From positions 2,046,001-2,110,000 of the forward strand of contig JBLDXI010000054.1 in NCBI GenBank assembly GCA_047495785.1: a stretch of 64,000 bases of DNA, given 5' to 3'. The notes below the pieces were generated by a model that was given only the letters and a program-made list of their open reading frames with translations, searched no databases and was not told the DNA's origin. A program made the position numbers and the translations under genes. Of this stretch, positions 38,736 to 61,491 are shown one piece after another (position 1 is the first letter of the stretch; each line of letters begins with the position of its first letter). Origin of the DNA: Lepidodermella squamata. Taxonomy: Eukaryota; Animalia; Gastrotricha.

Positions 38736-39281
38736 TCATTCTTCAACATTCGAATGGCTGCCGTTGCACGTGATGCCGCCGAGGGCGCCGCCGATGAGTG
38801 AAAACAGGACAATGTTACAGCACGAAGCCGCGCAAACCGACGCCCCAGCCGATATAACGCCCAGAAGGCCCAGCACGGCGAAAGGTCCGAAAAACGTACA
38901 ACCCAGCACAAGGCCAGCAACAGTCCCGACAATGATGCCCAACTGAGCGGGGCGTGAAATTCGCGGCTGGTTAGCTGTGGCCGTCACGGTCACGCTTGAT
39001 TGATCGGGTAGAAAAGCGGTGATTGGCAGGCCAGAGTCGCGGCGAATCGCGGCTGCGGTTGAGTTGGCGACGGCCTTTCGGCAAAACGGGCACTGTTGCT
39101 TGACGAAAAACCAGCGGGATAGGCAGATTGAGCATGCTGAATGGCCGCAGGGCAGCGTGGCCGGCGGTTGGGTGTCGTCGTAGCACAACTGGCATGAAGC
39201 TGGATGCTGGCTCGAGGCGGTTGGGGACGATGAACAGCTCGAATAGGTCGTCATAGGCTCGCTGATTTGTAAAACTTCCAT
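38736..39281 (-). CDS. RING-HC finger protein with C-terminal hydrophobic segments (membrane-anchored E3-ligase-like), intronless
   Basis: CQLC...LPCGHSACSIC...CPFCR motif followed by Gly-rich hydrophobic stretches. Confidence 0.85.
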   Translation of the reverse strand: MEVLQISEPMTTYSSCSSSPTASSQHPASCQLCYDDTQPPATLPCGHSACSICLSRWFFVKQQCPFCRKAVANSTAAAIRRDSGLPITAFLPDQSSVTVTATANQPRISRPAQLGIIVGTVAGLVLGCTFFGPFAVLGLLGVISAGASVCAASCCNIVLFSLIGGALGGITCNGSHSNVEE

Positions 39282-58149: not shown

Positions 58150-59495
58150 CTAAAAATATATTAAATAATGAAAAACATAAAGACCGCAAAACCACGTTTA
58201 AAAAAAACTCAGCGAAATTGGGCAGGATTCTTGATTTTTCTGGAATTTCTTGATTTTGAGAAATTTATTTATTTTTAGCAGCTTTTTGGAACTTGAAAAA
58301 TCCAAAATTAAATTGAAAATTCAAATTTTCAACGGCGACAAATTTAGAAAATTTGAAAAAATCCTGTTTTCGAGGATTAAAAATCAGTCCTTACTTTGAC
58401 AATGAAATAATAACGGAAAAAGGCGGGGAGACCCTGGCCTAGGCCTGTAAAACGTAAAATTTCGCCCTGCAACAGACCTGTATGGAAAAACCGGAATAGG
58501 CCTAATTCAGGCCTGGACTATCCCGCCTGCGGGTCCCAGGTATATTTTGTTGCTTTCCCTATCGAGCAATGGAATCAATACGATCGGGTTGATACACAAA
58601 TCAATGCTACATTGAAATAGGTAGGTTATATGCAAGGGCTAACGGGGTCTCTATCTCACCAGCTTTTGCTATGCTAATCTGATCCATTTGAAGGTAATCT
58701 ATGTCCTATTATAAGTGAAAAGTGGGAAAAAGGGAATGTGCGCGATCATTGAAGCACTCTGCGTGCTCGGCTTCAATCTGCTCTAAGCGTCAAAATCTGA
58801 CCATTCAAGGACATACAATCACAAAACTTTACATGTTTACAACGTCGCGCCGGTGTTCCAAGTCTCCCTCGTTTCTTTGAACAGACGCAGCGCCGTTACG
58901 CCGACAACGCTGTCCGCTTCGTCCTCCCGATCCGCGAAGCTGTCGAGCAACTACGCCTCTCTGCGAACCCGGTGCCCCGTTCCCCGCTGGCCCTGATCGC
59001 CAGCATGCTTCCTCGGGGTCCTCTGCCCACCTTCGGTGTGTGATCTTTCCGTGTCTCTTCCGTCTTTCTGTAATCCTGGTTCCTCTTTTCCTTTCTTTTC
59101 TCTTTCTTCTCGCTGCACTCCTCTATCTCTGATTAACCCACTCCATCTAATCATCTGTATACGATAAATATTCCCCACTAGCGTCCTCAGCGCACTGCCG
59201 CCGGCAAGCGTATGTCGTCTCGCAACCGGGCGCCATCTATGTCACTTTGTATATATTGTTCGACAGACGGGAAATTATTTCATTGTATTGTTCTTTTATG
59301 TTGGTGACTAATGGACAAATAAATTTGAATTTAGAATTTACAGTGGGAACGCAGCCGATAACCCAGACCCCAAATTTGCCGAGTAATCGCAGCTGTCTGG
59401 AAAAATTGTTAATATGCAATTCTAATTTTTTTGTATCAGGACACTTTTTAAATTCCTTTTTAGAATTTCCGCATCAGGCTTTTAACTCCAGCATC

Positions 59496-61491
59496 ATGTT
59501 GTTAATCTCGACATTCCACCTTTCAGACGATCAGTTCTCCTATCTGTTAAAGGTAACAACAAAGCCAATGCCTTGAAAGAATTTAGTGATCCTCTATGTT
59601 TCAACAAGAGCTTCGAAGTAATGCGCGGCCGCATTCTCACTAACGAAATTGCTAGACGCATAGCGAAGAAGGTTTGGTTATCGGTTGTTAAAGTTCGAAA
59701 TTGGTTTTACAACAGAAGAAGTAAAGCCAAAAAACACACCGGGAAGCCTCGACGAGGAAGAATTAGACAATGGCAATGGTGTAAAATCATCAAGGTAGTT
59801 GAATCCTCATTCCCATCCCCAGCATTGTCTGTAAATACCTGTGTACCATGTATTTAGGAAGTCGATAAGCACTACGTCCTTCCTCATAATGTGATTACTA
59901 AGCTGATGGCTGAAACTGGACTGTATGAGATTCAAGTCAGAGGAGCTTACTTGAAATACCGCAGCCTAATGATGGCGAAGAACGGATATCAAGCGCCCTG
60001 GAATAAGGTATTTTAGCCACTATACATAAGGTTCACGAAATAGCTTTCTAGTTTAGCGCATGCCTAAAGTCATCAAGGCTAAGAAGATTCGGCATTTCGA
60101 AGAAATACTTGGTGAAGAAAAGCACGAGTTGTTGATGTTGGAAGTGAAACATGATCCCAAGCTATTCAAGACGAGACGGCAGCTGCTGGCACGGAAATTT
60201 GGCCTTACCGAACGCCAGGTTGAAAGATTCTTCAACAAGTATCGCATGAAACAAAAGACATATGTTCGCAATAAGTTGACCAAGCAGCAGAAAGAAATAT
60301 TCGAGAAGGTAACACTGAGAAGCGTCATCTTCTTCATATTGTGTTTGCTTGTGTTACAGGAATTCGAACAGAATCCTGGCGCGTCACATCAGAGATCTCG
60401 TGAAATTGCTGAAGCCGTGGGCATAACATTCAATCAAGCCAGGAGTCTTGTCGCTCAGAAACGAGAACGTCTAGGAATCCGCAGCAGAGCGAAGTCTTCA
60501 CGAGACGTTAGAATCACGAATTCTCAACTAGCAGAACTGCAGGAAGCATTCCAATCAATTGTTGTAAGGGGCGAAAAGTTTGACGTTGCCCTGTATCGAG
60601 GTTTGGCCAAGAAAACTGGATTGAAATGGACCCTCGTCAGGCATTGGTTCTATACCCAGCGTAAATCTGCTGGCCTTGTAGTGAAGCCAATAAGGAAACG
60701 AGAAACTCTAGCTGAAAGTAGTATCTGTGCGCTAAATGCCGTGAGTTAAAGCCCATTAATGGATAGTTACGATGTTCCAACAATTTTGTGTCTTAGGAGT
60801 TCGCTGAATCGAGCCGTATGCAAGACGACAGAGTGCAAGCGATTGCTGACAAGTTGGGATTAACTTTTTCCCAAGTTCACTACTTTTTTGCTAAGAAGCG
60901 GAAACAATTGGGTATTGCGAAAAGAAAGCAAATTGGCCTTTACACACTTAAGCATGATCAGCGGCAAGCTCTGATGAAGGTGTGATCGGGCTTTTCTATA
61001 ACTTCCAAATGTATAAAAGTTTGATTATTATGTGTTATAGGCATTCGAAGAAAAGCCAGATAGAGATGAAGCTGATATGGCTTACTTAGCTGAAAATCTA
61101 GAAATTCCGTTTCCTTTAGTGGAACGCTTCTTCGAGCATCATCGCTGTAAACAAAGACGACCTTTCTCAAATCGAGTAGTTCATATCTTGGACTGGGAAC
61201 AGCGACTGCTTTTGGAAAAGGTAATCAAGATAAAAAATTATCAGTCTTATCTAAATTTTACGTTTTAAAATTCGCCCAGGAGTTTCAAATTTCGAAATTT
61301 GTGTCCCACGAAAAGGCTAAAAACCTGGCTACAACTCTCGGCTGTTCCATTAAGAAGGTATGGCTGTCTACAACATTTTCCAGATTCGTTTGAATTTGCT
61401 CTTTATCTGTCCTCAGGTGAAGCAGTGGTTCAACACGCAGCGGTTTGTCGAAAGGAAGAAAGAAGTAAAACAAGAAATTGGATCACCATAA
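59496..61491 (+). CDS. Multi-homeodomain protein with 8 tandem divergent homeodomains (about 513 aa, 9 exons)
   Basis: Exons 59496-59552, 59609-59794, 59858-60007, 60057-60308, 60360-60740, 60797-60979, 61041-61220, 61280-61357, 61417-61491, all introns phase 0; helix-3 motifs VRNWFYNRR, VERFFNKYR, VRHWFYTQR, VHYFFAKKR, VKQWFNTQR. Confidence 0.8.

Follow-up and report, generated by a model that had tools for sequence, protein, structure and literature searches.

The window considered here, namely, a stretch of 64,000 nucleotides from the Lepidodermella squamata (Gastrotricha) genome (assembly GCA_047495785.1, contig JBLDXI010000054.1, positions 2,046,001 to 2,110,000 of the forward strand; the contig is termed C54 below), contains near its end a gene whose predicted product consists almost entirely of homeodomain-like units. 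The gene occupies positions 59496-61491 of the forward strand, with the model having been rebuilt from the raw sequence. The coding region opens with an ATG at position 59496 and closes with a stop codon at positions 61489-61491, such that 513 codons plus the stop are distributed over nine exons. In each case, exon length is divisible by three, meaning that all introns are in phase 0. All eight introns begin with GT and end with AG and are 49-63 nucleotides long. Because seven of these introduce either an in-frame stop codon or a frame shift, they must be spliced out; read-through is possible for intron 4 only. The G+C content is 43.7% in exons and 34.8% in introns, as compared with ~41% in the window. 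An Rfam scan of the window returned no match. As to intron 4 (60309-60359), its 51 nucleotides are in frame and free of stop codons, and together with exons 4 and 5 it forms an open reading frame (ORF) of 229 codons (60060-60749). Were this intron retained, helix 1 of unit 4 would gain 17 hydrophobic residues.

The 513-residue product is tiled by eight units, numbered here according to the positions of the Antennapedia homeodomain. The units are spaced 60-66 residues apart, are separated by linkers of 0-8 residues and account for ~94% of the chain. Six of the eight are of canonical length, with units 1 and 5 containing two and four additional loop residues, respectively. Introns 1, 2, 4, 5, 6, and 7 all interrupt a unit at the same place, between positions 18 and 19 (units 1, 2, 4, 6, 7, and 8, respectively), while intron 8 falls between positions 44 and 45 of unit 8 and intron 3 lies in the linker joining units 2 and 3. 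Neither unit 3 nor unit 5 contains an intron. The protein is highly basic, with lysine and arginine together comprising 21.6% of the residues and with a net charge of ~+56, and includes 4 cysteines and 15 histidines. Arms and linkers are basic; the N-terminal arm of unit 1, encoded by exon 1 together with the first part of helix 1, is without basic residues. No zinc finger or any other domain was matched when the protein was scanned exon by exon against Pfam.

The residues at those positions that in homeodomains face DNA were next considered. Asn51 is the near-universal adenine-contacting residue of homeodomains. Here, it is found in unit 1 only, being replaced in units 2-8 by Lys, Lys, Gln, Thr, Lys, His, and Thr, respectively; in respect of this residue, the units are atypical as homeodomains. 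Trp48 is retained in units 1, 5, and 8, with Phe found at this position in units 3, 6, and 7, Ala in unit 2, and Leu in unit 4. Arg53 is present in all eight units. As such, unit 1 is the only unit with the full Trp48-Phe49-x-Asn51-Arg-Arg53 motif, with unit 8 presenting Trp48, Phe49, Thr51, and Arg53. A preliminary description of this DNA had proposed a protein of about 513 residues tiled by eight homeodomain-like units, a phase-0 intron repeated in units 1, 2, 4, 6, 7, and 8, an additional intron before the helix-3 motif of the last unit, the loss of Trp48 and/or Asn51 from most units and a lack of zinc fingers. Each of these features was recovered in the rebuilt model.

The sequences flanking the coding region include several candidate elements (Table 1). 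Within the 47 nucleotides preceding the start codon, two acceptor-like sites are seen, namely, tttttag and, 6 nucleotides ahead of the ATG, ccag. Further upstream, a non-coding block may, judging by its conservation, correspond to a regulatory element shared with the most similar paralog, found on contig C24. The distance between this block and the gene is ~630 nucleotides in the window and ~90 nucleotides at the C24 locus.

Table 1. Features of the homeodomain array gene in the window (coordinates within the window) and locations of related copies in the genome (contig coordinates).
Feature	Coordinates	Strand	Remarks
Whole coding region	59496..61491	+	9 exons; C24 paralog with the same layout, omega 0.29
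Exon 1	59496..59552	+	Start codon, unit 1 positions ~1-18; 79% conserved in C24, Met included
Exon 2	59609..59794	+	Unit 1 positions 19-60, unit 2 arm and helix 1 to position 18; PF00046 27.8 bits (unit 1)
Exon 3	59858..60007	+	Unit 2 positions 19-60 and linker; no Pfam match; profile match to unit 3
Exon 4	60057..60308	+	Linker, whole unit 3 (intronless), unit 4 positions 1-18; PF00046 27.4 bits (unit 3)
Exon 5	60360..60740	+	Unit 4 positions 19-60, whole unit 5 (intronless), unit 6 positions 1-18; PF00046 28.4 bits (unit 5)
Exon 6	60797..60979	+	Unit 6 positions 19-60, unit 7 positions 1-18; PF00046 23.5 bits (unit 6)
Exon 7	61041..61220	+	Unit 7 positions 19-60, unit 8 positions 1-18; PF00046 16 bits (unit 7), under cut-off
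Exon 8	61280..61357	+	Unit 8 positions 19-44; kept in paralogs
Exon 9	61417..61491	+	Unit 8 positions 45-60, short tail, stop codon; 22 residues 100% identical in C24
Candidate poly(A) signal AATAAA	61527..61532	+	36 nucleotides past the stop codon; predicted from sequence only
Candidate trans-splice acceptor and 5' untranslated region	59449..59495	+	Putative; stretch common to the C24 paralog
Candidate regulatory region	58599..58821	+	Non-coding; 78% identity to the block found at the equivalent place upstream of the C24 paralog
Family cluster	C23:1.362-1.472 Mb		Exon 5 matches
Family cluster	C54:422-466 kb		Exon 5 matches
Single copy	C24:3.919 Mb		Exon 5 match; ~80% identical
Window copy	C54:2.105 Mb	+	Dispersed long-form member

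Relation of the units to the homeodomain fold

Pfam, structure and database searches were conducted with single exons. Relative to the cut-off of 22.9 bits for the Pfam homeodomain profile PF00046, units 1, 3, 5, and 6 scored above threshold and unit 7 fell below it (Table 1). Units 2, 4, and 8, each split by an intron, were not individually matched by PF00046 when the exons were scanned one by one. When the family profile of unit 7 was compared with the Protein Data Bank (PDB), marginal matches to CDX, POU, and PAX homeodomains were obtained (best E-value 0.0035). The profile of unit 2 gave no homeodomain match in the PDB.

AlphaFold2 models were generated for exon 4 and, on the basis of 22 paralogs, for exon 5, yielding mean predicted local distance difference test (pLDDT) values of 75 and 72, respectively. 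Values of ~85-90 were obtained for the complete units (85-89 in the case of unit 5), with helices 2 and 3 of unit 4 being predicted at a pLDDT of ~81. The top fold matches of both models were all homeodomains, with root-mean-square deviations (rmsd) of 1.0-1.7 Å and target-normalised TM-scores of 0.8-0.9, and included, for units 3 and 5, engrailed, Antp, CDX2, NKX2-5, and the second homeodomain of DUX4 (DUX4-HD2). The exon 4 model, containing unit 3, was superimposed on engrailed, Antennapedia, and CDX2 with ~1.0 Å rmsd, while the exon 5 model was best matched by the double homeodomain of DUX4 and by a large number of single homeodomains. At low confidence, helix 3 of unit 3 was predicted to run on into helix 1 of unit 4.

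The units were also compared with one another. Profile-profile comparison of positions 19-60 aligned the units in register, with values of 97% for unit pairs 3-6 and 4-6, 96% for pair 1-5, 95% for pairs 1-6 and 3-7, and 93% for pairs 4-7, 6-7, and 5-6. The value for pair 2-3 was 69.5% (E-value 4.3e-5). BLAST comparison likewise linked units 4 and 6 (E-value 5e-6) and units 1 and 5 (E-value 1e-3). At the level of sequence, units 1-7 are thus mutually linked in register. Moreover, when the whole modules encoded by exons 6 and 7 were compared, an end-to-end profile match was obtained (95.6%; E-value 1.3e-8), as duplication of an exon-sized module would predict. Internal homology, accordingly, speaks for units 2 and 4, that for unit 2 being moderate and coming solely from its match to the unit 3 profile, since the match to unit 6 is weak. 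Unit 8 is assigned on the basis of its motif pattern and its place in the array.

With four units scoring above the PF00046 cut-off and two complete units predicted to fold as homeodomains, the concern raised in the preliminary description, namely, that most of the repeats might neither score nor fold as such, was not borne out. The protein can be placed in the homeodomain superfamily on the basis of profile matches, the three-helix fold, the conserved core and Arg53, with Asn51 being the hallmark that it lacks outside unit 1.

Paralogs, sister arrays and selection

The genome assembly (121.2 Mb in 151 contigs) was searched in six frames with exon 5, yielding 41 matches that fall into four groups (Table 1). 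Mapping of all exons revealed the two clusters to comprise genes arranged head-to-tail every 2-4 kb with a recurring exon order. The window gene is thus a dispersed member of a family of ~24-29 genes, a point that the preliminary description, which had proposed a search for paralogs, had missed. Two forms of the gene can be distinguished. The long form, containing unit 2, is represented by the window copy, the C24 copy, a copy at C54:464.5k and a few fragments. In the commoner short form, unit 1 passes directly to unit 3 within a single exon, giving seven units; indeed, unit 2 is absent from most cluster copies. Some cluster copies are fragmentary or contain stop codons.

The regions C54:416476-449349 and C23:1357058-1413848 are collinear apart from indels and show 95-99% identity; for five gene pairs across the two clusters, dS (synonymous substitutions per synonymous site) is below 0.04. 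On sequence grounds, these pairs would represent either haplotypes left uncollapsed in the assembly or a segmental duplication of very recent date, and the copy count depends on which of the two applies. Once these near-identical pairs were removed, ~24 distinct copies were counted, as compared with 29 when they were included. It was also noted that the last 19.8 kb of C23 correspond to a 99.85% identical inverted copy of the preceding 19.8 kb (C23:1431103-1479936), duplicating several family genes. As the assembly was probably derived from DNA subjected to multiple-displacement amplification (PMC11660948), this terminal palindrome may be an artefact.

Comparison of the window gene with its C24 paralog revealed all splice sites and the start codon to be common to both, with dN (non-synonymous substitutions per non-synonymous site) being 0.094, dS being 0.326, and their ratio, omega, being 0.29. 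The introns of the two genes are 66-84% identical. Carriage of the dispersed copy by a transposon was considered and set aside, given that the homology shared with the C24 locus reaches beyond the gene by ~0.9 kb on the 5' side and 0.43 kb on the 3' side and there has the look of plain flanking sequence, although terminal repeats were not searched for. Across the family (372 paralog pairs among 29 copies), the median omega is 0.40. Within unit 1, Trp48 and Phe49 are invariant in 23 family copies.

Positional entropy in units 3-8 separates two types of site. Positions 16, 20, 34, 35, 39, 40, 45, 48, 49, and 53 are almost invariant, with entropy being near 0 at Leu16, Phe20, Leu40, Val45, Trp/Phe48, Phe49, and Arg53 (units 3-7; 21-27 paralogs), while positions 50, 6, 51, and 47 are the most variable. 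Omega was then calculated for classes of site using 11 phylogenetically independent pairs, with the reading positions (47, 50, 51, and 54) and those of the arm (2, 3, 5, 6, and 7) having been set beforehand from textbook homeodomain-DNA contacts. Omega was 0.80 at the reading positions (bootstrap interval 0.66-0.97), 0.83 in the arm, 0.56 at other homeodomain positions and 0.14 in the core, the latter value being somewhat circular because the core class was partly picked after the entropy table had been compiled. Constraint is strong on the fold and nearly absent from the classical reading surface. That the reading residues are under positive selection had been entertained; with an omega of ~0.8, rather than above 1, this was reduced to evolution that is near neutral or mixed.

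A more distant family of eight-homeodomain arrays is found at C54:621-637 kb. Because its members are only ~30% identical to the window gene and present a different intron pattern, they are considered as a sister family, rather than as part of the same family. One sister array (C54:628741-629085) matches exon 5 collinearly along 124 residues, with its exon ending at the same 18/19 position. In the sister array, the 18/19 intron is found in some units, and the exon matching exon 5 holds two whole units. Given this shared exon end and collinearity, the eight-unit design seems to be older than either family.

Additional homeodomain clusters are located on C54 at 408-416 kb, 517 kb, 602-636 kb (including 602-616 kb), and 934-939 kb, as well as at C54:2003590-2004132 and, on the minus strand, at C54:2151652-2193154. 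A further cluster is found at C3:2355856-2381324. Two of the C54 clusters lie within ~42 kb of either end of the window. A genome-wide scan with the Pfam Homeodomain profile yielded 420 candidates, and all 150 of those that were scored exceeded the cut-off, many of them falling in the clusters just listed. C54 looks like a hot spot of orphan homeobox genes.

Two other observations concern the window and the genome at large. An ORF on the minus strand of the window (38736-39281), unrelated to the homeodomain gene, encodes a C3HC4 RING finger (Pfam E-value 1e-9). Elsewhere, at least four intron-free HSP70 genes, encoding proteins of ~653 amino acids, were identified (C2:1536188-1537993, C12:1308608, C2:1628354, and C15:4437728). 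The best public match of these, an ENA protein, is only 83% identical, pointing to a poorly sampled lineage. The best named HSP70 hits, at 74-78%, are scattered among molluscs, arthropods, tardigrades and other groups, and so do not discriminate between them. The assembly includes no mitochondrial contig.

Comparison with known homeodomain proteins and possible function

When 1.84 billion representative proteins were scanned by HMMER with exon 5 as query, a single match was obtained, namely, a Caenorhabditis nigoni protein of 1335 amino acids with at least 10 homeodomains (E-value 4.7e-5, summed over six stretches). The best stretch, located in helix 3, is 43% identical over 23 residues and thus reflects generic homeodomain similarity. 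No relatives beyond such generic similarity were found among the proteins scanned, suggesting that the family is lineage-restricted as far as public protein sets show. The L. squamata genome paper extracted homeobox genes and reports the Hox complement only, with no account of these arrays being found there (PMC11660948).

The closest counterparts in terms of design are found in nematodes, as the preliminary description had correctly stated. In Caenorhabditis elegans, CEH-100 contains a 'record-setting' 12 tightly packed homeodomains, while CEH-99 contains four (PMC4448998, PMC4901127). Both are encoded by orphan genes in duplication-rich regions and are without obvious orthologs even in other Caenorhabditis (PMC4448998). 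Like the window protein, CEH-100 and CEH-99 comprise almost only tightly packed divergent homeodomains, are lineage-restricted and fast evolving and, again as with the window gene, are encoded in a duplication-rich region that contains other orphan homeobox genes. They differ, however, in showing no specific sequence kinship to the window protein, in probably belonging to another phylum and in having 12 or 4 units, rather than 8. Moreover, the L. squamata array gene is itself present in some two dozen copies in tandem clusters and carries the repeated 18/19 phase-0 intron. True kinship with ceh-99 and ceh-100 could be argued from the sole library match being a nematode protein and from both arrays being tightly packed and made of homeodomains only (PMC4448998). 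Yet with that match being generic, with ceh-99 and ceh-100 themselves lacking obvious orthologs in their own genus (PMC4448998) and with the host being a gastrotrich and not a nematode, there is scarcely any chance of such descent, and the window gene was not assigned to the nematode family. As the scan revealed no specific similarity to the nematode arrays, the window array is likely to have originated independently of ceh-99 and ceh-100, as had been suggested earlier, probably in a spiralian.

Other proteins and gene families offer partial parallels. DUX4, which the two-unit stretch of exon 5 matches best in structure, likewise carries tandem homeodomains in one chain and is multicopy and fast evolving. 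DUX proteins, however, contain a pair of PRD-like homeodomains that each have Asn51 and are connected by a longer linker; they are only ~24% identical to the window protein. ZFHX3/4, ZHX1-3, and HOMEZ also contain several homeodomains each, including degenerate ones, but are deeply conserved and carry C2H2 zinc fingers (secondarily lost in HOMEZ) and long spacers. By contrast, the window protein has no zinc fingers and almost no spacers, and no orthologs of it were found; it does not, therefore, belong to the zinc-finger class. The mammalian Rhox, Obox, and ETCHbox genes share the tandem clusters, rapid change and lineage restriction seen here (PMC8208926, PMC3214919), yet encode a single homeodomain in which the canonical reading residues are kept. 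The TALE class includes the spiralian SPILE genes, of which some encode several homeodomains (PMC6118893). The window protein lacks the three additional loop residues of this class and scores only 12-15 bits with PF05920, as compared with a cut-off of 24. Assignment to the HOCHOB group (ceh-91/92/93) was similarly considered. In HOCHOB proteins, two homeodomains are separated by a linker of ~17 residues with two conserved cysteines. The window protein, with its linkers of 0-8 residues, contains no conserved cysteine pair. What appears to be new is an undescribed family in which an array gene with a repeated 18/19 phase-0 intron was amplified to some two dozen copies, with sister families nearby.

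We consider it likely that a real gene is in question, that its product adopts the homeodomain fold, that it belongs to a multigene family, and that it originated by duplication. Internal duplication of exons had been proposed in the preliminary description, and the repeated phase-0 intron and the in-register matches of exon-sized modules fit this proposal. The array would have grown as a symmetric phase-0 exon module was duplicated in tandem, each module starting at position 19 of a homeodomain and ending at position 18 of the following one, with introns being absent in units 3 and 5. The whole gene would then have multiplied, giving rise to a lineage-specific family of ~24-29 copies in long eight-unit and short seven-unit forms. 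It might be thought that exons from different genes have been combined in the model, or that the true gene has additional upstream exons, given that the frame is open for ~65 codons upstream of the ATG and that the model was assembled from genomic sequence. This, however, seems very unlikely. The C24 paralog has the same nine exons, phases and start Met, and the C54:464.5k paralog presents its exons in the same order. Homology of the window locus to that of C24 starts just 47 nucleotides ahead of the ATG, and an AATAAA sequence follows the stop codon. Still less credible is the notion that the window copy is decaying, be it as a pseudogene or as a neutrally drifting array. Although the family evolves quickly, as reflected in its median omega, and although some cluster copies contain stops or are fragments, the window copy retains an intact frame of 513 codons, its nine exons and all splice sites, and presents the low omega reported above relative to its closest paralog at a dS of 0.33, as well as a constrained fold core. 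The window gene is intact and selectively maintained.

As regards function, it is proposed that selection keeps each unit folded, through the hydrophobic core and Arg53, while allowing positions 47, 50, 51, and 54 and the arm to change almost freely. Unit 1, with Trp48, Phe49, Asn51, and Arg53, could read DNA in the classical manner, while the seven units lacking Asn51 would add non-canonical or low-specificity contacts via Arg53, the basic arms and the overall charge, with paralogs preferring different targets. The chances that the protein indeed serves as a nuclear multivalent binder of nucleic acids, with targets differing among paralogs, are put at roughly even. The preliminary description had suggested that the array may read long or repetitive DNA or act as a scaffold. 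The folds could instead have been kept as structural modules, with the protein acting as a protein- or RNA-binding scaffold or as a non-specific chromatin coat, rather than as a sequence-specific reader of DNA. Such a role would be in keeping with the loss of Asn51 from seven of the eight units, with the near-neutral omega (~0.8) of the reading positions and arm and with the near absence of linkers and the predicted continuous helix joining units 3 and 4, which would together render simultaneous docking of neighboring units on DNA difficult. On the other hand, Arg53 is found in all units, the arms and linkers are basic, the net charge is +56, in the long-form subfamily unit 1 still has the complete canonical reading motif, and the continuous helix is of low confidence. 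A purely structural role is thus deemed rather unlikely, albeit worthy of consideration.

Several points nonetheless weigh against the proposed nucleic acid-binding array and the evidence on which it is built. Splicing and the single-transcript model are predictions based on conservation. Units 2, 4, and 8, being split by introns, were scored as exon fragments and not as whole domains, and unit 2, the most degenerate of the eight, is weakly homeodomain-like. The copy number is inflated by the near-identical C54/C23 pairs and by the terminal inverted duplicate. The core class of sites was partly picked with the entropy table in hand, and omega does not rise above 1 at the reading positions. The loss of Asn51 from seven of the eight units and the near-neutral reading positions are explained equally well by a loss of sequence-specific DNA binding and by diversification.

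A bolder version of the nucleic acid-binding proposal, which we regard as improbable, is that the family represents the homeodomain counterpart of KRAB zinc-finger arrays, with a fixed scaffold on which the base-contacting residues (positions 47, 50, 51, and 54 and the arm) have been kept changing by selection. Were this so, the dozens of clustered paralogs could track rapidly changing DNA, such as transposons or satellites, or set lineage-specific programmes in the germline or early embryo and, together with the sister arrays, would place the homeodomain count of this small animal among the largest known.

More generally, any census of homeobox genes would be distorted by the several hundred homeodomain-like segments that the genome contains. 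The combination of a conserved fold with free reading residues also poses the question of whether homeodomain arrays diversify their DNA specificity in the manner of zinc-finger arrays. Finally, proteins consisting solely of numerous homeodomains have until now been mainly a Caenorhabditis curiosity. A second, independent origin, as is probable here, would point to a recurrent evolutionary solution, rather than to a nematode accident.

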